64,000 nt of DNA from Ascidiella aspersa (Eukaryota), in the NCBI GenBank assembly GCA_963924565.1, contig OZ004612.1, positions 20,894,001 through 20,958,000 of the forward strand, written 5' to 3'. Under the pieces are notes generated by a model that had not been told where the DNA came from, did no database searches, and saw only the letters and a program-made list of their open reading frames with translations. The position numbers were made by a program, and so were the translations under genes. Positions 11,600 to 63,464 of this stretch are shown here, in pieces. Every line of letters begins with the position of its first letter. Position 1 is the first letter of the stretch.

Positions 11600-13118
11600 G
11601 TCTGTCACGCTCTGAGGCATATTATGAAGAAACAACGAAGCTTAGGTCGTAGTTCCTTCGTGCTTTAAACAGCCCTTGATTGATACTTAGGGTTAACAAC
11701 CTTTCTTGTCTGCGATTGCCAAAAATAGTGTTGCACAGATTGGCATGGCTTTTTAACCCTGATTTAAGTTCAGTTATAGTCATATCTAGGCAAAACCTCT
11801 TATGGTGTGGACCACACCCAGGGTTTTTTTCTGAGGTTTTTGATTTTTAGAGATGACGTTATAAATTTAAATTTGCAGTGCTCGTCGTGTTAAAATGTGA
11901 AAATTAAATGGATTTTAAATATACTCAAGAAGGCAGGGCGTTCGCGCAAAGCTTGAGAAATTTTCGTTTGTTAGGTAAAACTGTCAGACTTTCTATTTAG
12001 AAGAGACTTTACGCATCCCTCATATATCTTGATGCTTTGTCAAAGCCATTTTCTGCAACAGCTGCATGGTTTCATAAAAAAAACATGGTGTAAGTTTGCG
12101 TCAATCACGAAAAACACATAATAATGCGTTGTACTTGTTAAACTTTGAATTTGGATGGGTGTTAATTAAAAGGTGATAGGGCAGGCATATTCACGACGAC
12201 CAAAATGATTTCGAATACTTAGTGAAACCGGCCAAAAAAATAGTTATTAGGGACTTGTCCTCACATTTCTCGTTTGCGCGGTAAAATATTATTTGGAATG
12301 GAATGATGGATCTCGTTTAGGGATTACCGCCTACTTTCACAAACTCACGAATGATCCCACTTGATGAGGATTTAACTTCGCTTAATTTTGCGTTCGTCAT
12401 TGGACTTGCGTGTTGCGTTTTTGTGATCAACTAAAAGATGTGGGACAATGATGAGCCCAAACCAAAGGGAGGGTTAGCACATTGCTAACCCCACTTACCC
12501 GGAGGGAAAATATATAAAAAAAAATGTGGGTATGTATTTCATTAAGATAAACACGATATGACATCTAATCTATATCTCGCTCGTATGAACTTAAGTTTTT
12601 TTTAGAAAAAGTTATGTGTCAATTTAAATTGCAAACGCCGACACAATGCAGGTACCAATAATACCGCATCACGGGAGAAACCAATGTCAAAGGTAAAAGT
12701 AGTTCCATTTTTAGGCGTGGTAAGATTTTTGAAGAGGCGTGTTACAATAAGGGTTGTTTCACGGTGTTTTAACTTTTTATATTATAGCTCTTTTTCAATT
12801 ATGAATATTTTAGGCATACCAAGTTGAATAAATGTTAAGTTGAATAAAAATGCATTTATGAATTACTTGATTTTTTTATTGTTACGGTACATTGTACATC
12901 AGGATTAATGTTAAAAAAAACACAAAAAATGTTTTAAAGTTACGAAAGCAAATAGAGATAATTACAAAAGGTTGGAACCACAGTAGTTCACTGAAAACAA
13001 AAATAGCGTTCATATGCATTTCCTATAGATTCGTATCAAAGAAAACAGCTTTTAATCCCCAGGCTTTTAAAGTAATTTGTTGATAAAACTGCTTCAGCGA
13101 AAAAAATGTTTTTAAAGG

Positions 13119-18556: not shown

Positions 18557-19325
18557 CGCTCTTTGGAATATACTACTGAAGTATAGCAGAATCAACGAAT
18601 GCTTAAAATCTGACAAAAACGATTTTTTTATAAACTTTTATCAGCACGTCCTCTCTCCACATTTGCATCAAGGCTATAAATATATATTAATAAGTAAATT
18701 TTAGTTAACGATTGTTGCCAAGTGTCTCTTGGTGATGAAACAAAGGCCTTTGTTATTTAAATGAATTCTGTTAACTTATGAGAAACCGTATTGACTAATG
18801 TAGTCACTAGACTAGATGAAAATCCCGGCCTTTTCCAGGGTAAATAGAACTGATAAAGGACTAATATATATACCTGTACCTGCTATGTAACTAAGGTACA
18901 CTCACTTGTATTACGCGCGTTAATTTGCAAAATCAACCTGAATTTTGGCTGGTTAAACAAAATGAAACACACCTTTAAGACGTGTTATGTAAGTTTTATA
19001 AATCAAACCAAATTCGCATTTGGTTATTTGCTTCACTATTCGCTGTTCACAGAACAGCTAAAACTTGTGGATTCCGGTCCTTATCCAGGCCTTTTCAGTT
19101 TTGACAGGAGCTTAAAAACGTTTTTACACACAAGGTTAAATCATACCAAAATAACAAAATGGTTTCGAAGAAAAAAATGCTGCAGTCACACGATTAAAAC
19201 TCGACTGGCCTCATGTAAAGTAAATATATTTTTTTTTCAATTCATTTATCGAAACGCTGTTCAAGACGGTCTAAATTCGGGTCGCACTCGCACAGCAAGA
19301 TAGTTTGAGAAGTCAACATTTATAA

Positions 19326-40987: not shown

Positions 40988-43900
40988 TTACAAAGTTATA
41001 TCGATTCTAACGGCGTGGTTGGCCATTCGGTGATTTAAATGGTTGATGGAAAGATAATCTGTTGAAACTCTGTATCGCTTTTAAAACTTATACGATTTAA
41101 TAAAGAATATTTTTTTGCCTGTAAAACGAGAAAAATGAATTCATTGTTGTTTTTTGTAAAAAAATAACTACAGAGAATTTTGATAAATAAAGCTCCGAAC
41201 ACAACGGTTGTCTTGTTAAACGTACGTATAATCAACTGCACTAAATTCTCCTAAAACTCTATTAGAACTAACGGTCATGTAATTAAACTGAATACCTTGA
41301 AAGAAGCATGTAGTTGAAGTAAACGTTATTCATTGTTCCTCGTAACATGGCTGTATTGTTTGTGAGTATTGTATTTCTTACACCCACTTCTAAGGTTAAC
41401 GTTCTTGACCCAGTTGAATTAAAGAGCTGAAACGTAATTATATTTTAAGCCAGTTTTTGTCCACCCAGCAAAAGAATGCAATAATTTTCAAAAAATACAT
41501 TCTTAAGTAACATTGCTGCCAGATAGGGGTCGACTGTTCGTTAACTCCCAAGACAAACAACAACAAAGACATTTAGAAGGCCTATACTATACAGGGATTA
41601 ATTTGTAGATGTTACCTCTGAACTGTACATATAGAAGTATATTTGTACAATAGAAGGGTCGTTTGAAGCCCCATAGACCTGGTAGACGGTATAGTAAGCT
41701 GATATTTGTGGAACTGAAACAGATCCCCCAAATGTGGACCAACTGCCAGAACCGTCCGCTCCAAGGTTGCCGTGCTCCTAATAAATTAAAGTTCATAATT
41801 GCAACGATCTACAGAAAAGAAAGAAATATACTAACAAAAAATGAAATCTCTTTTTTATTGTCCGCCACAAACTTTATTTATTTTTTGAATATAGCTATGC
41901 ATCCTGTGACCAGCGCAGTGTTTCTTAACCGTTTTTGAAGTCAGGGTGAACCACCAAAAATTTGGCGGAGCACCTGGCGAGCGAAGCGAGCGCGATTTTT
42001 GTTTTGGTATACCGGAATTTGTTTTGAATTTATTTGTTTTAAAGTTGTTAATAGATAGGCTTCATAGCATAATCCTTAAAGTACTGTATGCTCAATGAGA
42101 GATAAGCCGAAAGAAATATGTTTATATGTCCACTATTAAAAAAAAATATGTCTATTATTTTTTTAAAGTTTTCCGTTTGCCCGCGGCACACCGGTTAAGA
42201 AGCGCTGGCTGGCGACACAGCAGATGTTTGGTGTTACTTAAACGTTTGTTACGCACAGAGACATTTACATGTTTGACAATGTATTGTAGGGTTACAACGG
42301 GAACACATAATAAAACATAAAAAGTAACAATTAATATCTTAAGCAGAAAAATCTATAAAACCATAGTATTGAGACCAACGACGTAATACAGCCAAATACG
42401 CAGTAATATCCAGTACAGCATAGGTTCAAATTCGTCTGAATAAGACCTATATTCATCGGAATAAGGTCTAAATCCATCGGAATAAGGTCTAAATTCATCA
42501 GAATTAGTCCTAAATTCATCGGAATAATGCCTAAATTCATCGGAATAAGGCCTAAATTCATCGGAATAAGGCCTAAATTCATCGGAATTATGCCTAAATT
42601 CATTGAAAGAAGGCCTAAATGGCCAAAATAACCCCCGAACCTGTGGGTATATAGGGTATGAGACGATCGGGGGCCATGGGTCTGGCATCGGCCGTTTTGG
42701 TGACTACGACGCCGTCCAGGCACCGCTGTTTGGGCACCGGATTTTTGGTCCTGTTTGGGGTTATTGGGGGGTAATCGGTGGGTTTAGAAAATGGGTTGTT
42801 GAAATTATTAGGGAAGTTAGTGATGTACTTAGGGGTTGGGTTTTGGGTTAGTTAAAGTGTTGGTTTGATTCTGACCTTTTTAGGTCTTATTCCGACGGAT
42901 TTAGGACTTATTCCGATTTAATACCATTAGGTATTAGTCCTATCTTGATCTTATTCCGAATTGTGTTTTATTCTGTCGTTGGTGTTGTTCTTATTTCAGT
43001 TTTATGGCAGGAGTCCGTAAGCCTACACTTGTGTACAAAAATCGTAAACTGATAATAAGGCATTTGATTGGTGGTTTACGGCGCATATAAACAGTTATTC
43101 TGCAGATAAGTATTCCCATGTTAGACGGATATTACAATTAACAACAAAACTTACCTGCTGTAAATGGATTTACATGTGTTGTAAACAAGTTGTTTTAAAT
43201 ACCTTTTAAGCATAAAAAATAACTTCAAAAGTCAAGCTATTTTTAGATAATAGTGAAGTGAAGTAATAAACATCAAAAATAAAATACAATTACACAAAAA
43301 TGATAAATTCTTTCGATTTCACGCAATATGTGCACAACAGAGTCATAAAATACAGCAATTACCAACTAAACGGCTTTACGTATAAACCTAAGGTAAATAG
43401 ACCATTACGGTTAAAATGAAACAATTTAAACCCTTAATTTCAGGCCAGGTTATTTAAAAAAAATTTTGAAGTAACTTTGACTTTGTTTACATCTGGTGTT
43501 GCAGACAAGTCTGCAGTATTACCATCAAGCGAATGTCATGGCGGAGTCCATCCGTATTGCGAACAAGCATTGACAAAGTGAATGGATGCGAAGTCTTGGT
43601 AAGCCCAATGTAAGTGTTATTGTCACTGTAATGCAAGCACTAATGTCAGCTGAAAAAGCAGATAAAAACCAAATTATAATTTTGTCAAAAAACATGTTGT
43701 CAAAAAAGATTGGATAACAGTTTTACCTTTTAAAAGAAGAAACACAAAATTTTGAATGCTTAAAAGGTGTATCTTCGAAAATACTAAACACATACCTAAA
43801 GGAAGAATTGTATTGCAGATTTTGACGACTTGAGATCTCAGTTTCCACAGTAAGCTAAATATAAATATTTAGAAACGAATACAGCATGCAAATATAGATC

Positions 43901-46900
43901 GAATTGTTGTTTTACTTTCACTTTAAGTTATCGGTGACACTGTAGTGATTATTGTATACCGAATTTAACTAAAAAATAAACAACCTTATTTCCACCATCG
44001 TACATATCGCTTCCTCCATCCGTAATTGACTTTCCACTTCTGTCGTCGTACTTATACTTGTACAGACTTTCGTCGGACAGGTAAATCTCACGAGCAGCAG
44101 TGGATAGAGCGTCGACAAATCTTGTAATGTTATTCTTGTCTAAAGTTTAAATTAAATGGCTTTCGTTTTTTGTTACGTCACTTTCTGAATAATCGCAGAG
44201 TAAATCCACGTAAACTTATATTATATTATAAATAATATTTGAAAACTTATTGTGCGGTAAACAAATCCATTTTAATTCCAATAAGGGATGTCCGATACTT
44301 AATAATTGTCATCCGAGACATACAACCAATATTTTAACTCAACAGTATTTTAACTCAACAGTATATTTTTAACTCAACAGTATATTAATGACACCTTTCG
44401 TATGCTCAAGAGGAAATAAGGGGAATCGCCTTTCTAAATATTTTGTAATGTACTTTAACGTCCCATTGTATAATATCCACAGTTATCCTTCTGTATTCTT
44501 TAAAAATGTTTGAGAAATAAACATTGCTCCAAATCTTACTTACAATTACATTGTGCTATTTGACGTTCAGCATATTCTTCTCTTCTGATTGTTTGATCTG
44601 AATAAAGTTCAACAATAAACACGTATTTTAAATAATAATAAATCTTAATGCTAAAAATTGGCAAAAAATATATTGTCATTTCTATAACTAAAATTGGACG
44701 TTAAGCTTGTTAACAAACTAACTGGAGAAAATAAAATGTTTTATTACGAAAGTTTTTATGCCTTTATATATGCTGGCTAAATTTTTAGGGCATTTGTTCC
44801 CAATCTTTTCTGGCGACGTACCACCTGTAGTGACTTAAGTTTTAACTATAGCGAATAAAGATCTCATATATAATTGTATTGTTTTGTATTTTATTCTAAC
44901 GCAAAAATTATAGTTAACTATTTATATGTAGCAGGAATATAAAATAACATATATGTAGTACCATTTGAAAAGTTTCGCATGTCTCTTTATGTATTTTCAA
45001 CATGATGAAAAAGCACTGCAACTATTTTAAAAATTTACAAACCTTATTTAGTAGTTATAATGTAGTTACATGTTAACATTATAGCATTACCCTGTAGTTT
45101 AATTGCGCGACGATTGCATATCTCAAGTTGAAGTCTGGTGTTATTTGTTTCATCTGAAAAACCACACAAATCGTTGGGGATTATTTTGAAACGTTAGAGA
45201 TGGTATTAGAAACTACCCCTGAAAATTGTTTTAGTCGCTTTTTGTTTATCATAACTTAAGGTAGAGAAAGTGAAGTATAAGTTTTTATTAGTTTAAAAGG
45301 TTAAACATTTATACCATTACCAGAAACATGTAAAACATATATAGTATTTTACATCTATCCAGTTAACTTTTTTGGGTCATTAAAATACAGAGAATTATTA
45401 ACGAAGCCACCGTATAACACAGCACACTTTTACCTATTTTTTACAAATTAGACCAAAGCCCAGACGCTATAAGATTAGTATTTAAAAATGTAGGAATCGT
45501 ATTCCTATATAGCATTTTTGTTTTACCAATACTTTACACAGCAACCAACCTCGACAGGAATTTATTTCTGAGCCGTGTCTTTCACGATCGTCGCTTCTGC
45601 TCTCGTTACAACAACTTAAATCGTCTAAACATCGATAATTTTTAAACATACGTTAGAGTTTTACAACCGCTGATCCGTAAAAGTATACCAACTTAAAATA
45701 CGTTTTTTTTTGGTTAAGTTAACCCCAAAACTTATGAATATTTCAATTATCTATACACGTTTGGGACATTTATATGACCAACTTAACTATACATTATAGG
45801 CATGAGCAACGCCTATAGTAGTTCGTTTAGAAAGCCATGATATGTAAGTTAACTAATTTAAATCGATATAATAAATACAGGTCAAGATTAGCGTTTTTGA
45901 CAATTGTTCTAAAAGGATCCGGATCGCTAAAACTTTTTAATGCAGTATAATGTAGCGTCTTCATCACATGCCAGCAATCCTGCCGATGGTACGGCGACAG
46001 CTGTTTAGTTCTTGGGACGCGTTCAGATTACCCAGGAACGTGACTAAGAAACAACAAGCCAATAGTCAATATATGCTATAATTATAGTATTCAAACTATA
46101 CACGTTGAACTAGATCGCGATAAAGATAATCGCCAGTCCAGAAAGCGGCCGTGGTTCAAAGAATGCGAATATGGTGATCCCTTGCAAGAAAAAAAATCAC
46201 GAAAAATTGAAACACTCTTCGCCGTGTTAAATTTGCCGTAAGCCTAACTGTTTATGCTAGCCCATGCACCCTCTCCGTTGTGCGGTTGGTGATTTTTACA
46301 AAAACAAAATGTACTTATTTACCTTCGTTATGACAAATAAAACATTAAAACCTTTTGAAGGCGTTCTATCTTAATCAGGCCAACGGGCTGAGTTCGACAT
46401 TAACTTAATCAATTGCTGTCTATATGTACCATCGTAGGAGCCTTACCTTTCACATTGATAAGCTGGTTTCGTATTTTAAGAAATTCTTCTTTCGTGAAGT
46501 TTTGTTGCTGAAGAAGCACCTCTTTAACAAAAATTGTAAAGGATTTAATTTAAACTTTAAAAAGAGTGTTGGCTAACCATACGCGAAACAATATCGACCA
46601 AAAGCTTGAGCAGGAGCGGATGATATCCGCATATTTGTTGATATACATACCAGATGGATTAATGTAGGTAACCATCAACCATAAATAGTGTACACAATAT
46701 TCACAAAAACTACTGGGTTTTTTTAAGACGTAGTATTTATATCCATAACATTTATGCATTGTACAGCTTAGGAAGATTTGTGCTTATTTAAAACGTTTCT
46801 ACATAGTTTATTTAGTTTTACCAGTTCTATTCATTTGTAGCCTATCAATCTTTTGCAGTCTTGTATTAAATTCTTCAGAACCGAGCTGTGACATTTCTGA

Positions 46901-49900
46901 AACAATTATGCTTGATTAACATAATATACTATTTTTCAAAAAATGGAGGACCAGGAGTTGTTAAACTAGTTCGGTTGACCACTTGAGAAAGGTATGTGGA
47001 CAACTTTTTTGTACACGAAGGCCTAATTAAAATCTTAGTGTATAATTTACAAAATAAAAAAAAAAATTAAAGGAAAGAGTTTTTTGAAGAGGCGCTTTGA
47101 CACCTTCTTAAATATATTTAGACATTTAAGTTTAAAATTTAAGCATGAGTTCGGCGAATAATGACTAGTTTCTTAAACAACATGCTTCAATTGCTTCATG
47201 ACGTTAATAAATGACGTTACATGTGGGAAATTCATGCCGACCCTGGTTCACACAAACTAAAGAAGAATTGGGTCTCTGCGATAAAAATAGTTTAAGAACC
47301 CCTGGTATATACAAAACAAAAATTAATTAATCTTTTGACTATTTTGCACTCTTAAATTATTTGTCTAATCTAATTCATATCATCATTTAAGTTTCCTCGC
47401 CAATTAAAATTTACAAAAAAAGCAAACAAAATGGTTGTTCGGTAAAAACCTAATTTTAATATACCGTACCTTTCAAATTCATGAGAAGCTTTTTGATCCT
47501 ATGCAGTTCTGATTTTGTGTCGTTGTTTTGCAGTACAACAGCTTCTGTAAAGAACACAGGGATGTTTTTATTGAGGAGTTTTTATTTAAAAGATTTATGT
47601 AACTATAGTTGACTTCGCAAGGCCGTGTCTGGGGTGTCGATGTGTAATTTAAAAATAACTAAAAAAAAAATTGGCAGTAAAGAAGCAGGAGACCCGCCTA
47701 TCAAATGATTTTGGTAATGGCTTTAGTAAACCAAACGTGCTATTTGCGTCACCGTTGTTCTTCTTTTAATCAATTAGTAAAGCTTTGATCAAATGGTTTG
47801 TCTAGTCCAGGGGTTCCCAACCTTTTTAAGATCTCGTACCATATTGGACGCTCTGTACGGCCACGCGTACCACTTCTTGCAGAACAACTAATATCGAATC
47901 ATATTTTTAGCTTACAACTAGTATTATTCAACGCTAAAACAGTACATTATATTTATCAAGAGTAATCATTTGACATAATTAACGCCCAATGTACCACACA
48001 GCGTTGTGCGCTTTTCAAATCAACTGTGTTCCTTGTCGACAATTGACATGTCCTGTATTTTAAAGATCGCATTGTTTCGAAACAATAAGAATAGTTACGT
48101 AACAATAAGAATGAGCTTCGGGGAAATTTTTTTGTAAACAAAATATGAAGTTGTGAATCTAGAGTTTTAGGAGAATAAAACGGAAGCTACTCGCGTACCA
48201 CCTGTAAAGCCTTCGAGTACCACTATAGTGGTACGCGTACCACAGGTTGGGAACCCCTGGTCTAGTCAGTAGGAACCGTAGCTATTTCTCGACTACCCGA
48301 GCACAGGCGTTTTGTAACGTCCAGAAAATCGCTGAACAACCTTTTCACGCAATTAAGGTTATTAAATGTTAATTTACTCTATATTTAGTTCACGTTTAGT
48401 TTTACCTAACATTGCAAACTGAGGTAAACGAAAAAAAAAAAGTATTACCAGCTTTACAAAACTTTAGACAAACGACATAAATAGTACACTACTTTCAGCC
48501 AGATTTCGTTCCCCCCCCAAAAAAAAACATTGAAATGAAACTGTGATGCTCACTGGTAAAGTTACAGACCCTCGCTTTGACTTGGTTCAAAGGTATAGAA
48601 TAGATAAATGGCTTTCACCAGTGGTGTAAACTGAATATAGAAGCTTTGTGAAATCCCTTACACTTCAATCGCCAGGCAGCGCATTTGCACTTTCCCAAAA
48701 AATTAACAAGATTATAGCGTTACAGTATTTAAACGAAAAAGATTGGAGCATTCAACGGGTCAAACTGACATAATTCTCCATCAAAGTTTGTCGTCTAATT
48801 ACTTACATATAGAATAAAGTTTCCGTTTAATTCTAAGGGTTGCTGTTTGGATAGCGTATAGATTTCGTTTAGTTAAATAGGTGGTTGATTCATATGTAAA
48901 CTCGATTTATCGGCTAAATCAGTGTTTCTCCACCATTTTTCAAGGCGACCCAAATACTAAGCGTAAATTTTACAGCGAAGCTTTGGCGACTTAATTTTCT
49001 TCACTAAATGTTTTGTAAGCTTTAAGAGAGTAAAACACGATAAAGGCAATAGCAATGATAAACAAATTTAATGAATATGAGCCATGTCTTATACACCTGA
49101 ATTGTAGAAATCTTGCTCACAGCCAATATAAATACGTGCACTACGGCAGTCGGCGACCGAACCAAATCAAACGTCCACTCAATTTTGGATGGCGACTTAA
49201 GGGTTAACAAACACTGACCCCATGTGACATCCACAAAAATGTTTAGCTTAATTCGCGCTCGTACAATCCGATCGGTTATACAAATGCTGGTGATCGGGTT
49301 AAATTTAAGATAGAACAAAAGTCGTGTATCAGAATTATTAGCAAATGGGATCTGTTTGGTTTGTAATTGCGATTACAACGCTGCAAACACGTAGAATAAA
49401 ATTGCAAAAGTGTCAAATTACTTGATTTAAACTTAACATCATAGTCTCTGTAAAATCTGTATTTTTAAAGTAAATAATCATAAAGAAGGAATCTCATGAT
49501 ACAAACACTAAGTTGCTAGACTTCACATAAAGGCGATAATAGAAAAACCGTTTCCATTACTTACTTTCTAATTTTACAACACTATGACGCAATTCAAGAT
49601 CTATTGAAGTACTAAATATTGTATTGTCTGGCACGCGATTGCAAGCTTTCAACACTTGAATCATCGCAATGGTTCTTTGAAACATTTTTGCCGTGTTTGT
49701 TTCATTTCAAAGATTTTGGTGTTCTGTATACTGTAATGTTTACAAGTAAAATGCTAATTCGTTAACGCAACAGAATACCTTCAACTTTGGAAAGCCCCGT
49801 ACTAATTTCGCGTCCTTTCGCTTCCGTGTTGTTATTTTGTCGCATAATAAAATCTGTAATATAAATTGTTTCACAAAGCATCACTTGCAATGTTAACTTG

Positions 49901-52900
49901 TTTTCCAGGACATCATTTTGAATGCCTTAAATCAAAGTAAAGTAATTTGCAAGCTAATTTAGGAGGATAAAGTTCCAATCTATATCATTATATTGGTATG
50001 TAAATTAAGTCCAAGTGTACGTGGTCAAACGAATTTTCGCTATCGCGCAAATGCCTTTTTAACTTATTTAATATATTTATGACTAAGACTTAGTTGCATA
50101 TCTGTACATGACATTAAAGTTAACCTCATGCTTCTTAAGTTGCTTGTATTATGCGACCCGTTATGGCGTTAATTTGTGACGTCATCTCTAAAAGTTGTCA
50201 TGCGTTGTGGTAAAAAAATATCATCGTTCCAATATCAAAAACAATTTAACTCACACTTTTTCACGTAAAAAATGTGATCAGTGAAACCGTTAAATAACAC
50301 CATAGCCTACCTGTTAAATTTACTTGTTGTTTCTGCATCAATAAAAGTTTTTCGTTGATGCTGCTTGTATTTGACAGTATTTTTTCTGTAAATATATTTT
50401 AATAAAAATGTTAACTAGGAAAACAATAGAAAGTATAGGATGTATCCTTAGGTGAGATTCAATCTCGTTAGCAAACGGTTCTCTTACCAGGCACAGATCT
50501 AGGATTTTCGTTGGCACAAATGTTTTCAATTTCAGCAAAACAATGATACTAACAGCGCTTGTGGATTTGTCAGCTTAAACTGGATAAAAGATTGAATTTA
50601 TCGTGCCTCCTGAAAGTATCCCAATTCCACATATTATTTTTGCTGAGGCGGTACGAATCGGTTAAATCCTATACCACTGAATATATTTATATTATCGTGT
50701 AGGAAACAGTGCTTGATTTGTTCAGCAATGCAAATGTGTTGATCTTAATTACTGGCATCCGGGGTGTATGTCTATAGTCCAGGGTTTCCAAAACTTGTTT
50801 GAACCGCGGACCACTATTTGTGAATCTGTTTTCTCTCGGACCGCAATACAAAGCAAAAAATAAATAAAACCGAATTTTATTTATTTAAAAAACGGACAAC
50901 GTCAATGGGACGGATGCAATTGTTTTTTTCTGCCTAAATCATCGATTCTCGGAGTTATTTGTGAAAGGCAAACTCATAAGTCAGAGTCCAGGGAAAATCT
51001 GGACTTGTATTTTGTCTTCACTTGTATTTTGTCTTTATGTTGGTAAGAGCATAAAATGCTCTCTTAAACAAGAATATATTATTACGTCATAAACGAGAAA
51101 TACGAGAATATTTCATAAACAATTTTTTGACTACAACTATAGTGCAACAAGTAACTTTACGATATTGGATATAGCAAAAGCTTTCGAAATCATTGGGTTT
51201 TGAATAATTGCGGCAGTTTATCTTTGAAAGGGTACGTACTGTACAACGTATATATGTGGTTAATATCTTGTCATATCGCCACGGACCACCTGTGCAGTCG
51301 TCGCGGACCACCAATGGTCCGTGGACCACAGTTTGGTACACCCTGCTATAGTCTATAATCTAGGGGTCGGCAACCCCTGGCATGCATGCCACAAGTGGCA
51401 CGATAGATGATTTTTCAGGGCACGCCAAATGATTTAACGCGCACGTTATATCACCTTAAGAAAGCGCAACCATAACATCATACCACATCATTACCATTAT
51501 TATTACATCACTAACACCAGCGCTAACTAAATGGTTGTGCACATTTCCAGTTCGATGTGCAGTGTTGTTGTCATAAATTAGTGTCTTAACTGTTGTATTT
51601 AACGTTATTTTCTGTGAGCGTTAAATTTTTCATTTACGACTTTACAATGTTCCAAAGGTGGCGCGATGTTTACTGTTATAAAACAGGTCATTCTACATTA
51701 AAAGTTACGAGGGAAACTTTCATAGAGATCAGTGGTTAAAGCAGGGCAATCTAAAAGTAAGCACGAAGGTTTTTGTGCGACTGAGAAACCAAGCTAAAAG
51801 AGAAACTGTTAGTTAACAATTCTAGGTATCGATTGAAAGCGTCGAAGTATATTCCAAAATAGCGGGCACAGTATTGTGTTCGTGACAGTTTGTTACATTT
51901 TCTATGAGCCCTTTGAATGGGTTGCTAAATATTCATCTTATTTTAGTTACGTAAATGTGTGAAATATACAGGGTGTAGAGTCGGACCAAGATTAGGGACT
52001 CGACGAAATCTCGCACATTTGGCCACACTCGGACACGGTCAGTGCAAAACTAAACATAGAAAAATGTTTGGCACGCAAGTTGGGGATATTTTGACATTAT
52101 TCATAAACTGGCACACTGCATACGCTGTTTTGAGATGTTAAAAAGTTTTTCTTTCGTTTCTTTTTTACCGTTAGTATGCAATTCTGAAACAGAAAACGAA
52201 AATTAAAATACAAGCCAATGTATAAAGTGGGTCTCAAAGGGTCAGTTCACTCAGAATTACTGTAAAGCTTCTGCAAGAAAAACTATAAAAATGCTAATTT
52301 AAAGTTATTTAGTTAAAATTCGGCTACATTTTACTTCCGTGCTGTTACTTTGCCGCAGAAGCAAATCTGTAGCATAAATCGAAGATCACACAGTTTTACT
52401 TACAAAGTTTCAAAAGACTTTTAGTCAATTTTTTGAACTATTTGGTAATATTTGAACACCTGTCTTTAGAAATACATTAAGTGATTTTGCCTATTTTAAA
52501 GAAAAAGGAACATTTTTAAAACCTTTTAAATAAAAAAGGTAACCGATAACTCTTTTCTTTTCTGAAATATGGCATATTAATAATCCACCTGTTGAATTTT
52601 GTTGTTTTTTCTGGATCAGTAACAGTTTTTCCGATGTGCTGCTTGCGTTTGACTGGGAAACTTCTGTAAAATTATTTTATTACAAACACAAAATAAAAGT
52701 TTAAAATACAGGCATAATATCAGCCGAAAGAAAACTGTCCAAAAATAATTAAAAATGCTTAATACAAAGTTCTACCTATATCCACAAGCTGTTTTTGAAT
52801 GGAGAGGACATTGTCTTCCATTTCTTGTTTTCCCTGAGTGAGGAATTCTGTAATATAAATCTAAGATTGTTGCGACAAAATGCAAACGTTTAACGTGATT

Positions 52901-55900
52901 CGAGAAACCATGACAAAACTCGTTTTGGCAAACTAAAAAACGGCAGGTTTATCGTTATGCGTTAAAAGAAATTGTACCTTCAACTCTGGAAAGCTGATTT
53001 GCTACTTTGTGGCCTTGTGCATTTGTGCGGTTACTTTGCTGCATGAGTAATTCTGTAACACAAAATGGCTTTCGGAAGTTAGACACGCAAGGCTTAAGTT
53101 ATTTTCTATTTTACTTTCACTCATGATGTTAAAAAGTAGCTTTAAGTAGGGAAATGTGATTCATAATTTCGCGACGATCTGCTTCAGTTTTGTTACTTTG
53201 CCCCAAAAACAAATCTGCAACACAAATCGACCAAAACCACATTTACTTTTACATAAGCTGTAATAATGTTAGATAAATTGTCCGTAACAAATTCTTGCCG
53301 CGTACCACAGTCAAGGGCGGATCCAGAGGAGGGGTAAACCATGTCTCCCTCCCAAACATTAATTTTTGTCAACTTTATTATGTAAATACAAACAATCACA
53401 TGCTCTTCTTCGTTTTAAGAAAATTTGTTAAGCCCCACGTTCACAAATTCGACAAAAGACGATGTCTGTTAAAATAGACTTTATAAATGCAGTTATTTCT
53501 GGCAACCCGCGTGTCTCTCTACAGTTTTGCCAATTTAAGAGCCCTGCATTATATGGTTAATTGACTGTATTTCGATTAACTTTTGTTGAAAACTACCGTT
53601 GATTGGTTGTATATGCTTTCACAGCCAAATAAAGCTTTGTTTAACCCAGTGATGAAATTAAGCCGGAACTGCCCGGGACGCCATTTCGGTAAAATAATTT
53701 TTCTATTTTTACCAGACCATGTTCTGTTTTCACCGGGCCATCCCGCCATCTCCTTAAGTGTATTTCAACAAAAGTTCAGGTTGCACATTTGCGTACTACG
53801 TCGAAAGATAATCTCAGGTTTGTCAATATTACTTTTTTAAACGTCCCGTTAGGACGTCATTTGTGACGTCATTTCTGCAATTTTCATGCGTTCCGGTATC
53901 CCTAAATAGTTAAACTTTTTAATGTGGTGCAAAATGTAGCGATTACAACCGACAAAAGTGATGATTTTTTGTTGTTAAAAGTAACTTCAACATTGGAAAT
54001 GTGTTTCTTCATTCCGCGACGTTCTGCTGTCGTTTTGTTGCTTTGCCACAAAAATAACACAAACACAAATCGCCAAAAAACAATTTCACTTAAAAGTTTT
54101 ATTGGTGACACTTCTTTCGTGATATACCACGATTAGCTTTGGTAATTTTAATTCGTGATTTTGGTGGTTCTTATTCTTTTTTGCTTTCGGTGTTAAAGTA
54201 CCACTCTGCTTTTGCCAGCGCTAGCCGCATATGTTAGACAATTTTTTTTCATTTAAATGTGGAAAAGAGAATAAAACTTGATATGAGCAATAAATAGAAC
54301 GACCGGTAATAACTCCGCGTAAGACCCAAAGCTAGTCCAATACCATCTGAAAAGCCGAAAAAGTGAAACCTAGTCGCTATAGTCAGTAATTCTTTATAGA
54401 TTTACACACATAAGATGGTGGTTTGTATTGCTATGTTTATAGCAAAACGCAAGGATAATAAGTGTAAAATAAATGCTGATTCGTTATGGGTTATTACCAC
54501 TATACCTTTAACTTTGGAAAGTTGCTTTATAATTCGGCGATCCTTTGCTTTCGTGTTGTTACTTTGCTGTAGAAGCGATTCTGTAACAAAAATGGACGCT
54601 TATGTAGTTGAACAATGAACGTGCAGTCGTGTTCGATTGTCATATGTTTTTGTTTTTTCTCTGTTTAACGTTTTTCGTAAATATACAACTTAATAGTTTT
54701 ATTAGCAAATCAAACAAAATCAAAAAGTTTTTTTGTGAAATATAAAATACCACGTAGCCTGCCGGTTTTTTAAATGAATAGAAGATAGTAGTTTGTGCTG
54801 CAATTCGTTTAACTGAACATTTCTGTAAAGGTATTTTATTACAAATTCAAAACAAAGATAGAATGCATTCAGTTATCAGTTAAGTTAAGAGGAACAGTAA
54901 AATAGGGGAAGTACTTCACGTTACAGTTTAAATCAGGGGTCAGCAACCTGCGGCCCGCCGATGTAATTCATCCGGCCCGCCGCCTCTTTGACAAATTTGA
55001 CACGTGTCCATTTCACATACATACTTTTTGACTATTTGAACTATACGTAAGTGCAAAAAAGTTTTGCGCTGCGCGCGATTCAGCATGCTACGTCCGGTAT
55101 GTTTACCTTTTTGTGTTTTCACCTATAGATGAGCGCTTCTTCACCGTTTCGCCATGGAAGGCAGCCAAGTGCGTCACGGGAAAACGGAAAAGGTATTCGA
55201 AATATACAAACAAATATTTTTTAACAAAACTTGCAATAAATTTTAAAGGAATGCCGGTTTACCCCAAAAAATCGCGCTTTCTTCGTTCGCCAGCTGTGCC
55301 TTGACTTAAGAGGTTAACAAACACTGAGCTATATTAACTTTAAATGTTATTACGTACCCTCAAAGTAGTGTAGGCCTATGTGTTTGTATTTCTAAAGATT
55401 ACGAAACCTTTAGCCGCTTCTTTTTAAATTTTGCGTTTAAATCAATGATTTGTTTTTATAATTACATGCTGAAATATCCATACAAATTGCATGAGGCATC
55501 CGGGGTATAGGCCCTAAGTCTATGACTCTATACCTTCTAAACTCTTAAGTTGTTTTGAAATGCTGAAAAGTTTCTCTTCCGTTTCTTTTTTACTCTTAGT
55601 AAGCAGTTCTGAAACATAAAACGACAATTAACCAGTTGAAACACATTGCGAATTTCTGAAGTGGGTCTACTTACAAAGTTGACAAGATTTTTAGTTTATT
55701 ACTTGAACCATTTGGTAATGTTTGAACACTTGTCTTTATAAAAACATTCAGAGGTTTTACCTCTTTTAAAACATTTTATAGAAAAAAGGAAACCGACAAC
55801 TGTTTTCTTTTCTGGAATATGGCATATGAATAATCCACCTGTTGAATTTTGTTGTTTTTTCTGGATCAGTAACAGTTTATCCGATGTGTTGCCTGCGTTT

Positions 55901-58900
55901 GACTGGGAAACTTCTGCAAAATTATTTTATTACAAACACAAAATAAAAGTTTGAAATACATGCATAATATCAGCCGAAAAAAAAAACTGTCCAAAAATAC
56001 TTAAAAATACTTATTATTAAGTTCTACCTATATCCACAAGCTGTTTTTGAATGGAGAGAACATTGTCTTCCATTTCTTGTTTTCCCTGAGTGAGGAATTC
56101 TGTAATATAAATCTAAGATTGTTGCGTCAAAATGCAAACGTTTAACGTGATTCGAGAAAGCATAGCAAATTAAACTCGTTTTGGCAAACTAAAAAACGGC
56201 TGGTTTATTGTTATGCGTTAAAAGAAATTGTACCTTCAACTCTGGAAAGCTGATTTGCTACTTTGTGACCTTGTGCATTTGTGCGGTTACTTTGCTGCGT
56301 TAGTAATTCTGTAACACAAAAAGGCTAAAGGTTATTTCATTTTCTATGTTACTTCCACTGATGATCGGCTAAAATTTGCATTTGACAAATTATGTAACAG
56401 TATAGTTCGCTATACCGAATTGAATTTGAATTAATCATTCGGGCTTTAATTTTTGGGACATATCTTGTTTTAATCTTGTATTTCTATTAGCCTTTTATAA
56501 AGATATAAGTGTTTTTTTAACTTGTTTTAAAACAGGGAGTCGAACCGGAACCGAACCGGAACTTTATGAACCGGTTTTGGGTCAATTTTTTCCGAACCGT
56601 AACCGAACCTGAACCGGTTTTTATAAGATTTTAAGGAGCCGAACCGGAACTGAACCGAATAATTTGAAAGTACCTGAACCTTAACCGAACCCGAACCTGT
56701 AAACAAAAGCGGTTCGCTCCAGCATGACGTCACAACTTCTATTTTAGTCAAGTTCGCCATGTTCGAAATTTTATGAAAAAAATATGAACATTGATTAAAA
56801 AAATCGTTCATTTTTTTTCTTTTTTAGATATTTCAATATTGAGTTGACTGTTTTTTTAATAAGTCACGGAACTTAGATTAAATGAATTACAATTCAAAGA
56901 TTATTCTCTACATTTATCGACCCATATTTTGAGATTTAGCGCAAATTATATTGTATCTGAACCGGAACTTTATGAACCGGTTTTGAAATAACGATTGTCG
57001 AACCGGAGCTGAACCGGAACTTTTAAATTCCTCCGAACCGAAACAGGAACTGAACCGGATTTTCGAAAAATCCTTGAACCCGAACCGAGCCTGAACCGGA
57101 AAAGTTAAACGGTTCGACTCCCTGTTTTAAAACCAACGTTTATAAAGCATCACCTTTTATAATGGGTTTCGAAATCTGTGAACTACAACAATGAAAATTG
57201 TTGATTTTTACTTTGTTGTTAAAAATACCTTTAACTTCGGAAATGTGCTTCATAATTCCACGTCGATCTGCTCCAGTTTTGTTACTTTGTCGCAAAAACA
57301 AATCTGTAAAACAAATCGACCAAAATCACATTATTTATTTTTGCGACACTCCAGCTTTACTGTTGTTTTTTCGGGACACAACCGCTTTTAGTAATTTTCT
57401 TCGCGACACCTTACCGTTTTTATTAATTTTAATGGGTAATTGGTTCTTATTCTTTTTTGAGCGCGGATCACCTAGTCAGGGGTGGATCTAGAGACGACCA
57501 GATAAATAACCAAAAAGATTGTGAAGTTAAAACACTCAATTACACCCCAAGTCAATTGATTCAATGATCAAGTCACTTTGAACGAAACGACTTAAGTTAT
57601 GACTTAAGTCATTGCAACACTGTCTTGAATTAAATGACTTGAAATTGTGAAAGATCAGGCAAGGAAACACTTCAACTAGGTTTAAATTAATCGCTGAAGT
57701 TTGTTATTGGTTAAAGAAAACTGAAACAGATGAAGCGCTACTAGAAAAACTACTAGAAGAAGCATTTTTGTTACTTCAAAAGTGTGTCGCGTGCAGCACA
57801 AAATGTTCTTTGCACAAGCTTAACCATCGGAACAACTGAAAAGCATACACGTAACACGAACACATACAGGTCGAGAACCATTAGATATTTTAACCGGTGA
57901 AAAGCGATATAAAAAAACAATTGTATTTTATTGTGGGATGTATATGTTTAGTGTTTACCGACCAATTCTACTGACAAACTGTAGGCTATAACGCGAAGAC
58001 CTACCGGTTGAGTTTTGTTGTTGCTTTTGAATTAATAAGAGTGTGTCGCTTGTCTTCTTCACGTTTGAGTGAAACACATCTGCAGTTGATATCGTTACAA
58101 ATAGAAACAAAATTAACACTAAAAACAAAACAGCAATATGTACGCTTGAGGGTCGGTACTTAAACCTCGTAAAAAATGTTTTTTAGTAGTTGGCGCATTT
58201 ACCGACCACCAGGTTCGCTTCAAAAGCGAAATTCATCTGATATTATTTTTTTTTAGTTTTTAATCGGATACAAGTGTACGCTATATCTTATCTTCGAAGC
58301 ACGTTTTATAAATTATGTGACGCATTATGCTTGATGACTTTTACGTTTCTAATTGTACAAAAGAAAGCTTTACCCAGCTGTTGTCGAACGTTGAGAAATT
58401 GTTTTTCTGTTTCCATTTTTTGCTGCGTTAGCAGTTCTGCAAAACAAATTGTTAAATAATAATATGTTGCAACAGAATAAAAAAAAAAATAAAGGCGTTT
58501 CAAGTCTAAAAAATGCAGATCAATTTGAATTTGTGTTTAAAATCGATATTTAATATGTGTTCTTAATAAATATATTTTCAAGCGGTCATTTTTCAAACGA
58601 CCATACAAAAATAACGATCACAAGATTTAAAGATAACCAGTTTGCGAGGAATTGATATAACATCATTGTGTAATAAAAACGGTCATATTCCTTGGGGATA
58701 TAGCGAGGTGGTCTATAAGGAAAAATGGAAACATATGGTACCCTTACAAAAATATCTCGTCTAACTGGAGAAACGACAAGAAGCAGTTTTTGAAATTCTC
58801 TGTGGGGGTTGCTCTGCAACCTATCTCCATAGGAGAAACTAAAGACTTTATACTTGAAAACTAGAAAAAATCCGCCATGTCCGCCATGTCCGCCACGAAA

Positions 58901-61171
58901 AAGCGTTCTGTTTGACTGTGACAGAGAATGCGGTTAAACTTCGATACGAAAAACACCTGAAGAGGTAAGTTGGTATCTATTACCGAAACGTCCATTATTT
59001 ACACCATAAGAGAAATTTCTCACTATGGTTGTTTAAATATCTTTGTTAATAAATGCAATGTCGAGAAAATAATTTCGATATTTTATTTTTTTTTATTTTT
59101 GGGTTTATCGTTTTCCATGTTACCTTTTGTACGGTAGTGGTAAGTGCATCTTAAATCGAACCTCAGAGGAAAAAGCTATCCAAACCAAACCTAAATTTTA
59201 TTTGCCAAACTGTTTAAAATTGGTCAGTATCCGTTGTAACTTTGAATATGTAGTTAGTGTGATACCTTCAATTTTTTGAAAGCGTGTTGTTAATCCCAAG
59301 CTTTCTGTTGCCGTGGTGTTACTCCGCTGCAAAAGCACTTCTGTAACACAAATACAGTAGACAGTTATATACTTTGTAATAATTAATTTTCTATCTCACA
59401 GATTTTACTTTAGTGTAGCTAGCGGTTCCCAAACTTTTTTATTCCGTGGCCCAATTTTTTTTATAAAACACTCCGTGGCCCACTGTGTGCCGTAAAACAT
59501 TTTTGTACGGCCTTTAGCGCATCGTCCAAATTTGATATATCAGCCTGGTAGATATACAAAAATTGCATATAGCAAAATTCCCTGTCAGCAGTTGAGACTG
59601 CCGTTGCGAATAAAACTATAAGTCTGGATACTACAAACCAACTCATCAAAGCAGTCAGCTATACATTGTTATTAAATCTTACAAAACTAACTTTTTTTCG
59701 ATAAAAGCTTTCTGTCATAATACAGTTAGTTTAAGTCCTGAAACCACCCACCAAGAATCATTTGAAGGACGTTATAATTGCGATTTATTTTAGAATGTAT
59801 CTCTTCAGCATTCTTGACATGCAGTTCTGAAATGAAAAATGCATTCCTCACAATGAATCTTCCGTAAAAAAATTAAAAGTTAAGATAAAAATTTGCGCAA
59901 AAGTAAATTATTTAGAAGTTCATTAGTTTAATTGAAATTCACAATTTGTATAGGGTTCATAATGCATGCATTACATTTTGTAGAGTTTTGTTTTTAATTT
60001 GTTAGAGCATCAAGAATTAATTCAACAAACCATTAATCGGTGAAATTAAACTGTCGTTTTGGTTGTCCTTCATGAACAGCTGGCTTGGTTTAGTGTCTGA
60101 AGACTCTAAATAATGAAAAGAGTTCGACATTAAAAAAAGCGAAAGTCAATGCAATTAAACCAATAAAAAACGGCCACATACTTAAGTTATCTTGACCACC
60201 GATTTTTACCTGAAAAAAAAAAACATATTAAAAGATGGTAATAAATGCTATATGACATTATAACTTCAATTCAAATCTATATGTTATGACATAGATCAGT
60301 TGCAAAAGTAGCCAGGATTGTTCTGTACGGCGATCGCAGGTCCAACATTAGCTGCCGGAACGGCGGTCAAAAAAAAAGTAAAATTATTTTTACCCGTGAA
60401 AATGTAACTTTTTTACAAAACAAATGTTATTTCACCAGGCCATATCCCTTTTTCAGCAGGCTTTACCGTCATCTCCTTTAATATATTGAAACTTATAATT
60501 CAGTTGCATATTTGTGCACTACATGGAACGATAACCTCAAGTTTCCTAGGATTACTTGTTTTGGATGTTTTTTATGAACTTTGTGACGTGACGTCATCAT
60601 CTATAAGCGGTAACAATTTGTTCTACTTTCACCCGACATATACATTTGCGTTTGTTAATAGTGACCTCCTGACAGCCTTTTTTTTAAACTTACCGTAATT
60701 ATAGCAAAAACTACCAATACAATTACAAGAACCACTGTCTGGCATGCTATAAGGATGTCAAGCCTTCTTAAATTCTTTTGCATATTCAGTATATTGTGAT
60801 GTAATTTTTCTTCATCTCCACTTCTGCAAACCGAATCTTTCAAAACAAATTTGGGTTCAATTTAACATCTTCGAAAACGAAATCAATTCTAGGAATATAC
60901 TACATTTGAATGTTTATAATGTCGTAAAAAGCAATAGGCTTTTCTAACTAACAAACTGACAGGCAATGTAAATAAAACAAAAGTTAATATTTAAACAAAG
61001 TTCAAAGATTCAAATGCACAAAATGTACGAAACAGCAAGACTTAATGGCAGTAATGATTTGACTTTTCAATGATCTCGGTTTTGTGTTTATTTAGGTATA
61101 ATCTTATAAGTTATACCTGAGGGTTGAATTTCTGACAACATTATTTCGACCTTGCTGTCTGTTCTTGACAT
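40988..61171 (-). CDS. Uncharacterised type II transmembrane glycoprotein: short cytoplasmic tail, TM, mini-exon-encoded coiled-coil stalk, orphan C-terminal domain (about 820-860 aa)
   Basis: N-terminal exons 61117-61171 (ATG), 60694-60836 (TM ILIACQTVVLVIVLVVFAIIT), 60182-60209. Phase 1-1 exons 60031-60105, 59752-59826, 59266-59340, 58374-58436, 58005-58079, 57229-57303, 56234-56308, 56028-56099, 55839-55913, 55534-55608, 54506-54580, 52978-53052, 52776-52847, 52589-52663, (52124-52183), 50311-50385, 49779-49853, 47470-47544, 46822-46896, 46447-46521, 45550-45624, 45091-45153, 44544-44597. Head exons 43985-44139, 43796-43854, 43523-43625, 41616-41777, 41296-41426. All are GT-AG and stop-free in one frame. 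The last exon is uncertain (40988-41069, or a short one starting at 41118). Confidence 0.82.
41911..42208. mobile_element. Decayed hAT MITE (intronic)
   Basis: cagtgtttcttaaccg ... cggcacaccggttaagaagcgctg; TSD imperfect. A similar end occurs near 31090-31140. Confidence 0.6.
42361..43007. mobile_element. Foldback-type element with 21-bp tandem repeats in inverted arms
   Basis: About 9 copies of aaattcatcggaataaggcct (about 42428-42620), inverted copies at about 42879-42961, accaacgac / gtcgttggt near the termini, G-rich core. Confidence 0.7.
44331..44382. repeat. Minisatellite, 3 copies of about 16-19 bp (tattttaactcaacag)
   Basis: Direct tandem copies visible. Confidence 0.8.
47808..48259. 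mobile_element. hAT MITE
   Basis: Perfect TIR caggggttcccaacct, gtaccac repeats, TSD gtctagtc. Confidence 0.93.
50780..51345. mobile_element. hAT MITE
   Basis: TIR cagggtttccaaaac / gtttggtacaccctg, cggacca repeats, TSD ctatagtc. Confidence 0.9.
51361..52123. mobile_element. hAT element lacking its right TIR, abutting a truncated stalk exon
   Basis: Left TIR taggggtcggcaacc with tggcac motifs; tggcac motifs recur at 52070-52117 but no closing ggttgccgacccct. Confidence 0.7.
52124..53110. repeat. Recent intragenic duplication, copy A (copy B at about 55551-56360)
   Basis: Exons and introns align almost base for base (e.g. taatccacctgttgaattttgttgttttttctggatcagtaacag at 52581 and 55831). 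Confidence 0.93.
52300..52366 (-). pseudogene. Dead stalk exon (in-frame stop)
   Basis: cag|AT TTG CTT CTG CGG CAA AGT AAC AGC ACG ... AAA TAA; homologous to the xLLQQSNxT exons. Confidence 0.65.
53140..53214 (-). pseudogene. Dead stalk exon (donor GT mutated to CT)
   Basis: 75-nt open paralog of exon 57229-57303 with intact acceptor but AAAG|ctactt instead of AAAG|gtattt. Confidence 0.75.
53985..54057 (-). pseudogene. Dead stalk exon (both splice sites lost)
   Basis: LFLWQSNKTTAERRGMKKHISNVE, paralog of 57229-57303; no AG acceptor and donor reads G|ttactt. Confidence 0.7.
54751..54822 (-). pseudogene. Dead stalk exon (stops in phase-1 frame)
   Basis: Acceptor context matches exon 55839-55913 and a GT donor is present, but it reads AA ATG TTC AGT TAA. 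Confidence 0.55.
54934..55320. mobile_element. Truncated hAT element
   Basis: caggggtcagcaacctgcggcccgcc left end with ggcccg repeats; right boundary unclear. Confidence 0.55.
55551..56360. repeat. Recent intragenic duplication, copy B
   Basis: Colinear with 52124-53110 except that about 160 bp (52234-52397) is absent. Confidence 0.93.
56533..57124. mobile_element. hAT MITE with GAACC subterminal repeats, copy 2
   Basis: Perfect TIR cagggagtcgaaccg, TSD ttttaaaa; homologous to 29034-29578. Confidence 0.93.
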
Positions 61172-62355: not shown

Positions 62356-63464
62356 TAGATAGAAATCGCTCTTCTGGTGTAAACGAAGTATAAACCGACG
62401 TTTCGGCAGCGGATAGCAGCTGGCCTCATCAGGGTTAATAATTAAAACGAGGGTGCGTTAGCCAACTTATATACTAAGGGTATAACATAAGACTACACAT
62501 TAAAATTAATAAATCTAGACGTCGCTGAAGTATGCGATCAGCTGTGACGCGACGAAGTCATCCGGTGCAGAACTGCGCCGTCGGACAACGAGCGTTTATC
62601 AGCTATTGCGTATAGCTACAACGACGAGTAGATTGCCGGATACCACTTATCGTTGGTGTTAGGACATTTGTCAAACCGGAATGATTCAATGAACCGTCTT
62701 TTGTAATAGTGCGGTTCCCAGTCAATTCCGTGTCGAAGTTTAACCGCATGCTCTGCCAGAGCCGACCGGGATGCCCTTTCACTGCGGACATCACGCATGT
62801 GTTCAAGCTTCCTGGTGTGAAAGGGACGTTTAGTTTCCCCTATGTATGTTGCCGAACAACCTCCACAGGGAATCTCATAAACAGCCCCTTGACGTTTTTT
62901 CTGGTTTAACTGGATCTTTTGGTGAAGGTAAAATGTTTCCAATTTTTCTGGCCGGTTTGAAAGCAGTAGAAATGTCTTGGCTTTTCAAAATACGTTTTAG
63001 TTTTTCTCCCAGACCTGGAATGTAAGGAATAATGGCCAGACCTTTAGGTTCTGGTTTAGATGTTAAATGGTTAGATTTTTTTGGGGGGGTTTAAACAGCC
63101 ATTCGGGGTATTCGTTTATTCTCATGGCCTTTTTAACATGTTTAATTTCGTTAACTTCGTCCTTATTGTTTGTACAAAGTTTTGAAGCTCGGTGTAGCAG
63201 GGTGTTCACAACCGAGCGTTTGTGCTATAGAGGATGGTCCGATCTGAAATTCAAGTAGCGATCTCAATGAGTTACTTGAATTTTAAATACCTTAGTTTAC
63301 CTGACCGGTTCCGAGTGATTAATGAGTCCAGAAATGAAATTGAGCATTTTTTCTCTGTTTCCATTGTGAATATTTTGGTTGTTTCCAAGCTGTTTAAGTG
63401 GTCCAGGATCTGCTGTATCAGGTTGGTTTTATTATAACAAACGTGTCATCCACGTATCTTCGCC
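62356..63464 (-). mobile_element. 5'-truncated, frameshifted Penelope-like retroelement (RT C-terminus + GIY-YIG endonuclease + 3' UTR)
   Basis: RRYVDDTFVI at about 63433-63462, FTMETEK..ISFLD, RYLNFRSDHP, IPYIPGLGEKLKRIL, then GAVYEIPCGGCSATYIGETKR...LEH...SALAEH (62616-62942). Multiple stops and frameshifts. Confidence 0.93.
62391..62438 (-). ncRNA. Minimal type I hammerhead ribozyme of the Penelope element
   Basis: Minus strand reads TTAACC CTGATGA GGCCAGC tgctatcc GCTGCC GAAA C GTC^GGTTTA: stem I AACC/GGTT, intact CUGAUGA and GAAA core, stem II with one bulge, vestigial stem III with palindromic ACGT, GUC cleavage triplet ending at 62397. Confidence 0.85.

Follow-up and report, generated by a model that had tools for sequence, protein, structure and literature searches.

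The window analysed here is a gap-free stretch of 64,000 nucleotides from the ascidian Ascidiella aspersa (C6:20,894,001-20,958,000; about 35% G+C), taken from a genome of 308.6 Mb in 75 contigs; positions below are those of the window. Its region 40988-61171 is poor in open reading frames (ORFs) when scanned in the bacterial manner. Reading the exons and checking their boundaries, we observed that this region carries an open chain of GT-AG exons on the minus strand, running from 61171 to 41036 and consisting of an ATG exon, a transmembrane exon, 22 intact phase 1-1 stalk exons and six head exons. Intron phase 1 is used here to mean two leading bases and one trailing base per exon. A single frame runs through these 30 exons, with canonical splice sites, over a span of 20 kb. 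The exons were joined for a frame check and for hydropathy and periodicity arithmetic, and the full joined model is open, with a predicted product of about 811-825 residues. The hidden multi-exon gene of the original prediction, which had given no strand, is borne out by this chain, and six exons could be modelled for a head for which five or more had been claimed. Four copies, A to D, lie in tandem, head to tail, on the minus strand of one 33-Mb contig, and this gene is A, the first of them.

The 5' end of the gene and its predicted membrane anchor comprise three features.

61117-61171, minus strand: exon 1, ATG plus 18 codons, ending in phase 1; a hydrophilic, predicted cytoplasmic N-terminus, read directly
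60694-60836, minus strand: exon 2, the remainder of the hydrophilic tail and the sole transmembrane segment, with about 21 hydrophobic residues
60182-60209, minus strand: putative micro-exon of 28 nt, phase 0 to phase 1, with a long T-run and CAG acceptor and a GTATGT donor

An in-frame stop codon lies 18 nt upstream of the ATG (61171). The original prediction had placed the transmembrane exon within a phase-1 chain; the exon and its anchor are indeed present, but splicing at its consensus donor, GTAAGT at 60693, ends the exon in phase 0 and so out of step with the phase-1 stalk. There are two ways to make this join, both of which keep the frame open. The first is an alternative donor four bases downstream, at 60689 (gtttaa), which is weak, would give phase 1 and was evidently the join adopted in the original prediction; the second is the micro-exon (60209-60182), which is open in all four copies and whose inclusion yields a model that is wholly open. 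We favour the putative micro-exon because its splice signals are stronger; the sister copies cannot separate the two joins, since the intron concerned is near-identical in all four. In 19-residue hydropathy windows the best score of the joined model, 3.12, falls on residues 47-65, the next best being 0.53, and the model has no N-terminal signal sequence. A single hydrophobic segment that follows a hydrophilic N-terminus, together with the extracellular character of the parts downstream, indicates a type II orientation for the predicted protein.

The intron that follows the transmembrane exon (60213-60693) contains about 250 nt that are practically identical in the four copies; for non-exon sequence elsewhere, copy A matches B or D at about 92%. 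The intron also contains the palindrome TGACGTCA (CRE-like), near 60590. Either gene conversion or conservation of a regulatory element could account for the near-identical sequence; an Rfam search over the whole gene, this intron included, gave no match.

The stalk is encoded by a family of short exons, listed here together with three copies that have lost a splice site or the frame and with a duplication inside the array.

44544-60105, minus strand: stalk, 22 intact phase 1-1 exons, verified for AG/GT, open frame and length
17 exons of 75 nt (end = start - 74), minus strand, starting at 60105, 59826, 59340, 58079, 57303, 56308, 55913, 55608, 54580, 53052, 52663, 52183, 50385, 49853, 47544, 46896 and 46521
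56099-56028 and 52847-52776, minus strand: two exons of 72 nt
58436-58374 and 45153-45091, minus strand: two exons of 63 nt
44597-44544, minus strand: one exon of 54 nt
53985-54059, minus strand: dead stalk exon copy, acceptor and donor lost (TG/TT for AG/GT)
53140-53214, minus strand: stalk exon copy with intact frame, donor GT changed to CT
52292-52366, minus strand: truncated stalk exon copy with stop codons; a 39-nt symmetric remnant with a weak donor is possible at 52366-52328
52514-56326, minus strand: internal tandem duplication, about 3.25 kb per unit, 93-96% identity

A repeat search returned a dispersed unit of 80-110 nt that reads, on the minus strand, as a polypyrimidine tract, CAG, about 75 nt and GTA. 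Using nhmmer with a DNA profile built from eight copies, we obtained 17 matches (E 7.8e-23 to 3.7e-6), all on the minus strand and between 46.4 and 59.8 kb, and no match to this profile elsewhere in the window. Because 17 copies fit one DNA profile on one strand, the stalk exon family is not a product of chance. Besides the main exon type the stalk includes a second, and both are open between AG and GT. Similarity among the old repeats is limited to the exon and about 25 nt of its acceptor, and the exons differ from one another by 20-40%; good splice sites nevertheless flank every one of the 22. The predicted count of 22 intact symmetric exons (17 of 75 nt, two of 72, two of 63 and one of 54) thus withstood a check of AG/GT, frame and length. 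All 22 begin with AA, AT or AG and 20 of them end in G, so that nearly any pair of exons will form a Glu or Asp codon at its junction, as is the case at 20 of the 22 joins. Since the exons are symmetric, phase 1-1, their gain or loss is harmless to the reading frame. The three dead copies, in turn, show how unconstrained copies look.

The chain ends in six exons that encode the predicted head.

43985-44139, minus strand: H1, phase 1 to 0; helix and DGGxDMYDxGN motif
43796-43854, minus strand: H1b, 59 nt, phase 0 to 2; donor GTATGT; found by exhaustive enumeration
43523-43625, minus strand: H2, phase 2 to 0; acceptor phase the same in paralogs
41616-41777, minus strand: H3, phase 0 to 0; GADGSG and, further on, DPS motifs
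41296-41426, minus strand: H4, phase 0 to 2; ends in the Y.LLS strand of the family
41036-41077, minus strand: best candidate for the terminal exon, a short helix and then a stop; closest to the C-terminal helix of homologues

Exons H1, H1b, H2, H3 and H4 align with residues 28-224 of a Phallusia mammillata protein and with paralogs in this genome, and the head as a whole is predicted to measure about 215 residues. In the sister copies, out-of-frame indels start right after the H1 donor. The counterpart of H1b, whose product aligns with Phallusia residues 75-93, is a 56-nt exon of distant C6 paralogs at 0.95 Mb; the exon plan of these paralogs is a 56-nt exon, phase 0 to 2, and then an exon with one leading base. 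A different candidate for this exon, 43795-43727, was rejected, since it produces a frame conflict in all four copies, and paralog structure and enumeration lead to 43854-43796 in its place; position 43795 is the start of the GTATGT donor of H1b. For the terminal exon, candidates starting at 41240, 41118 and 41077 all keep the frame and run into a stop within 8-14 codons; this stretch hardly differs between the four copies.

The intron between H2 and H3 contains a minisatellite of about 9-10 copies of a 21-nt unit (42407-42637), with a 50-nt inverted copy at 42868-42917, 280-360 nt away. On the minus strand the minisatellite is open in two frames of 111-130 codons, one of which spells a repeated SDEFRPY-like heptapeptide with no Pfam match; it is probably intronic repeat DNA and not an exon.

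Comparison of the four copies reveals how the stalk changes. The A+B unit runs collinear with the C+D unit for about 60 kb, intergenic DNA included; the two are 97-99% identical, with 97.5-99.1% between A and C. The number of intact stalk exons is 22 in A, 9 in B, 16 in C and 9 in D; that copies so nearly identical should carry such different numbers means that exon number changes quickly. The difference between A and C resides mainly in the internal tandem duplication of 3.25 kb, whose units carry the exon triplets 56308/56099/55913 and 53052/52847/52663: in copy C a single unit is present, and the collinearity of A and C breaks at 53070-56437. In copy B two stalk exons lie within an inverted segment; one exon of copy C is frameshifted, and one of copy D has its AG changed to AT. 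Exons of the stalk are duplicated in tandem, deleted or silenced by loss of a splice site, and it is through these events that stalk length evolves. The claim that stalk exons can be skipped, duplicated or lost in frame is accordingly matched by actual gain and loss between copies of 97-99% identity (22 against 16, and two different sets of 9).

The two units, A+B and C+D, appear to stem from a segmental duplication of very recent date, or they may be haplotypes left uncollapsed. In the latter case the assembler would have set two haplotypes of one unit in a row, C and D being the alleles of A and B, and 22 versus 16 exons would be an allelic polymorphism. The collinearity of the two units, which extends to their intergenic DNA, is what this explanation would lead one to expect, and 97-99% identity falls within the range of ascidian heterozygosity; all four copies, however, lie on one 33-Mb contig in a genome of 75 contigs, and we consider a misplaced haplotype unlikely, if worth keeping in mind. 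Such a haplotype would alter the meaning of the copy-number difference and leave the gene model unchanged.

The joined stalk exons encode 22 modules, each of 18-25 residues, for a stalk of about 530 residues in all. Its composition, taken over 511 residues, is rich in Leu, Gln, Lys, Asn and Glu, with 0.4% Pro and 2.3% Gly. When exons of the main type are placed in register, positions 2-4, 17, 21 and 24 of 25 are hydrophobic in 72-90% of them, while positions 5-13 are polar and hold the N-glycosylation sequon (NxS/T), of which the stalk exons contain 19. The dominant hydrophobic period of the joined stalk is 3.55 residues, a result matched by none of 300 shuffles, and harmonics of the 25-residue unit are also present in the hydrophobicity spectrum. 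As 25/7 is 3.57, each module would account for about seven helical turns. From these observations we infer that the stalk is an alpha-helical segmented coiled coil with a glycosylated polar break in each module, and it probably self-associates. A neck of short tandem repeats with heptad character, a trait of the CD23/DC-SIGN/langerin class, is present by sequence.

The head, by comparison, has many relatives. Six-frame searches of the genome with H1 and H3 recovered the three sister copies, at 92-98% identity, and at least 48 further copies of the head family at 31-51% identity, in clusters on C2, C3, C6 and C8. A profile of H3, built from 14 genomic copies and compared with 1.84 billion representative proteins, gave 150 matches at E <= 1e-3, 69 of them at E <= 1e-10; those with names are uncharacterised proteins of Ciona intestinalis, C. 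savignyi, Phallusia mammillata, Clavelina lepadiformis and Styela clava. The motifs DGGxDMYDxGN, GADGxG, DPS/T and Y.LLS follow one another in this order across the five core head exons, whose phases are common to the paralogs. Pfam gave no match on the head exons, on full homologues or on 30 aligned homologues over the domain. The predicted head belongs to an unnamed extracellular domain family that has no Pfam model and is strongly expanded in ascidians. In homologues the domain adjoins CUB, Sushi, WSC, Kringle or collagen parts or sits inside an intelectin-like protein, and the proteins have signal peptides, C-terminal anchors or short N-terminal anchors.

Several members of this family deserve mention in their own right. 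At C6:950000-989999 there is a tandem array of at least six short head-family genes, about 6 kb apart, with the exons H1, 56-nt exon, H2, H3 and H4; other clusters lie at about 25.73-25.79 Mb on C2, at about 8.5-10.2 Mb on C8 and on C3. In two homologues (a protein of 606 residues from a JGI/IMG contig and Ciona savignyi H2YWI5) a head domain of about 230 residues interrupts, as judged by eye, an intelectin-like (X-type lectin) protein midway, so that one domain lies within another. Homologues of this kind measure 606 and 573 residues; neither the fibrinogen-like N-terminal segment nor the core of an intelectin is encoded in the present gene. Giant bacterial surface proteins of 3,800-4,800 residues, from metagenome-assembled genomes of Cryomorphaceae, Roseiflexaceae and Opitutales, match the H3 profile weakly over about 40 residues (E 2e-9 to 5e-6), and Pfam finds no family over the matching stretch. 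The domain family may extend beyond ascidians.

By contrast with the head, the other two parts are confined to this locus. When the genome was searched with a stalk-exon model, 44 of 45 significant matches fell inside the locus, and the anchor exon occurs genome-wide in the four copies of this locus only. Among the 150 best head homologues, none combines an N-terminal anchor with a long helical stalk. Because the stalk and anchor exons are private to the locus, and because none of these 150 homologues has the two in combination, the predicted architecture is a local invention, in which a common ascidian head was joined to a new anchor and an exon-amplified stalk.

A sequence search of the PDB with the head family returned noise (E >= 0.017, to MICA). 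An AlphaFold2 model of a 250-residue Phallusia homologue, built with 30 aligned family members, is confident, with a predicted local distance difference test score (pLDDT) of 86.8 and a predicted template modelling score (pTM) of 0.87; it contains a beta sandwich of 11 strands, with two helices at the N-terminal end and one at the C-terminal end. Foldseek against the PDB found nothing at E <= 0.001 with this model; its best rows, above that threshold, were N-terminal domains of GH92, GH94, GH65 and GH116 enzymes. In a structural alignment of all against representatives, 50 of 50 among the matches listed were galactose-mutarotase-like supersandwich domains with Z 6.3-9.1, namely N-domains of GH65, GH94, GH116, GH15, GH31 and GH38 enzymes, phosphorylases, aldose epimerases, polysaccharide lyases and YidC. 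These alignments cover 140-198 residues (179-198 of 250 around the best Z of 9.1) with a root mean square deviation of 3.3-5.0 Å and 3-12% identity. An ESM Atlas search was uninformative, with scores <= 0.83. The head fold is likely to be a galactose-mutarotase-like beta-supersandwich, and this resemblance points to sugar binding, as a lead only. As regards other binding domains, Lectin_C has no Pfam match in the head exons, its single appearance among 30 full-length homologues (E 0.13) being noise, and neither Collagen nor SRCR has a Pfam match in any exon.

From these observations we hypothesize, with reasonable though not full confidence, that the locus carries a lineage-specific ascidian gene for a single-pass type II protein of about 820 residues, with a modular stalk and a head of an unnamed family. 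A hydrophilic tail of about 46 residues would remain on the cytoplasmic side of a single membrane anchor; the extracellular part would open with a stalk of about 530 residues, assembled from 25-residue modules, one per phase 1-1 exon, each with about 2.5 heptads of hydrophobic a/d positions and a polar stretch bearing an N-glycan; and the tip would be formed by the C-terminal head of about 215 residues, from the unnamed extracellular family. The stalk would hold this putative sugar-binding supersandwich head tens of nanometres off the membrane.

Several points weigh against this reading and should be set out together. The join between transmembrane segment and stalk requires either a putative 28-nt micro-exon or a weak donor, and the 3' terminal exon is ambiguous among three candidates. 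The type II topology that had been claimed has in its favour the one hydrophobic segment at 47-65 and the extracellular-type parts after it, but the charge on its flanks (three Lys or Arg on each side) shows only weak asymmetry. The fold match is middling, with Z at most 9.1 against 7-8 typical for best hits of unrelated proteins, and it was made on a homologue about 45-50% identical to this head, not on the protein itself. The H3 query found no near-identical protein in the public collection. Finally, copy B has lost its ATG and has two stalk exons with stops and one that is frameshifted, so at least one member is decaying.

The last of these points belongs to a broader alternative, in which all four copies are young, unexpressed or decaying pseudogenes whose frames are open only because the duplications are recent. 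Besides the state of copy B, the broken exons of C and D, the missing public protein and the ambiguous 3' end would fit such a picture. Yet copy A keeps all of its stalk and head exons intact, although its stalk exons are 20-40% divergent and hence old: 22 of 22 retain frame and splice sites while three neighbouring stalk exon copies have decayed. Exons are also more conserved than the remaining sequence between copies (96.3 versus 92.1% for A and B, 97.5 versus 92.5% for A and D), and indels whose length is not a multiple of three are confined to introns, the indel of exon 1 in copies B and D being 3 nt long and in frame. The ratio of non-synonymous to synonymous change (pN/pS) comes to 0.62 for the stalk and 0.52 for the head, below 1 in both, although these values rest on few changes, about 28 synonymous and 59 non-synonymous, from non-independent comparisons. 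In a symmetric array, moreover, broken exons can simply be skipped. We judge that a locus composed of pseudogenes is improbable, somewhat more so than a misplaced haplotype.

It is more doubtful still that the gene is real but its stalk an extended, glycosylated, non-oligomeric spacer with a protein-binding head: each module does contain a polar stretch of nine residues, sequon included, at positions that an unbroken heptad core would need to be hydrophobic, and the fold match is middling and silent on ligand while the partner domains CUB, Sushi and Kringle are mostly protein-binding, but the significance of the hydrophobic period of 3.55 residues is strong, the stalk has little Pro or Gly, and the family occurs beside WSC and inside intelectin-like lectins, with supersandwich domains usually found in carbohydrate-active proteins.

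The modular type II protein with a helical stalk, then, is the reading that we carry forward. A further step would be to regard its stalk as a tunable ruler that presents the same sugar-binding head at different heights across individuals, alleles or splice forms (9-22 modules, about 30-80 nm if helical) and that is used in recognition, for example of self and non-self or between sperm and egg. If that were true, this would be a receptor diversified by reach and not by its binding site; we offer the idea as a long shot. An immune, allorecognition or gamete role, which the original prediction had expected, finds no support here: head sequences agree at 92-98% among the four copies and pN/pS is about 0.5, which shows neither an excess of amino-acid replacement nor a sign of diversifying selection. 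Nor is the combinatorial splicing suggested in the original prediction supported, good splice sites being present at all 22 stalk exons. We stress that what we describe is at present an interesting gene model and not a demonstrated recognition system.

Two other features of the window lie outside the gene.

13100-18650, minus strand: a separate multi-exon gene, in which the open stretch 16604-17155 matches Pfam Pkinase (E 2.9e-15)
62616-62942, minus strand: an open frame of 108 codons with the motif YEIPCGGC..YIGET...R..EH

The open stretches that adjoin 16604-17155 have no Pfam match that reaches the curated cut-off. The motif at 62616-62942 is, we presume, akin to the GIY-YIG nuclease of a Penelope-like retroelement; Pfam gives no match for it at E <= 0.01.

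The interest of the locus is threefold. It provides a clean natural example of a spacer made from symmetric phase 1-1 exons, in which birth, death and block duplication of exons are visible at 1-3% divergence; it places a member of the unnamed extracellular domain family, which has neither a Pfam model nor a solved structure, in a membrane setting; and, if expressed, it would be a tractable system for how the length of a receptor stalk is set and how it matters.

A literature search turned up nothing of relevance. The known systems with which the predicted protein can be compared each share part of its plan. Its closest relatives in the head are ascidian proteins such as Phallusia mammillata CAB3260506.1 ('LOC100175507'), Ciona intestinalis XP_078491493.1, Clavelina lepadiformis XP_076803186.1 and Styela clava XP_039250619, which have the head and its motifs in common with it (E down to 1e-122, for multi-copy proteins; 45-52% identity exon by exon for Phallusia), but those are either secreted or type I proteins, or fusions with CUB, Sushi, WSC, Kringle or intelectin-like parts. 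In predicted fold a homologue of the head resembles the N-domains of GH65, GH94, GH116 and GH15, the aldose 1-epimerases and the periplasmic domain of YidC, at 3-12% identity and with no catalytic context here.

The parallel drawn in the original prediction with CD23, DC-SIGN and the scavenger receptors holds for the predicted layout, that is a type II protein with a repeat neck and a C-terminal head, and fails for the head itself, which is neither C-type lectin, collagen nor SRCR. The class A scavenger receptors (SR-A, MARCO) have a collagenous Gly-X-Y part and an SRCR head; as the predicted protein has neither, it is not a member of that class. Nor is it a member of the type II C-type lectin receptor family, because the defining C-type lectin domain is absent from the model.

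CD23 (FCER2) is a type II protein with a short cytoplasmic N-terminus, a helical coiled-coil stalk of short repeats, each of 21 residues and encoded by its own 63-nt exon, and a C-terminal binding domain. The predicted protein resembles it in its putative orientation, in a repeat stalk with one exon per repeat and in a C-terminal binding domain, which is here a prediction; it differs in having 22 repeats instead of 3-4 and another predicted fold in place of the C-type lectin head, and there is no sequence relation between the two. DC-SIGN and L-SIGN (CD209 and CLEC4M) are likewise type II proteins, in which a neck of 23-residue repeats sets oligomerisation and reach. Their repeats lie in one exon and vary by slippage, and their heads are C-type lectins, whereas the repeats described here occupy separate symmetric exons that vary by duplication, loss and splice-site death. 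In L-SIGN the number of repeats varies by allele, and this variation is paralleled by the 22, 16, 9 and 9 stalk exons of the four copies at the present locus.

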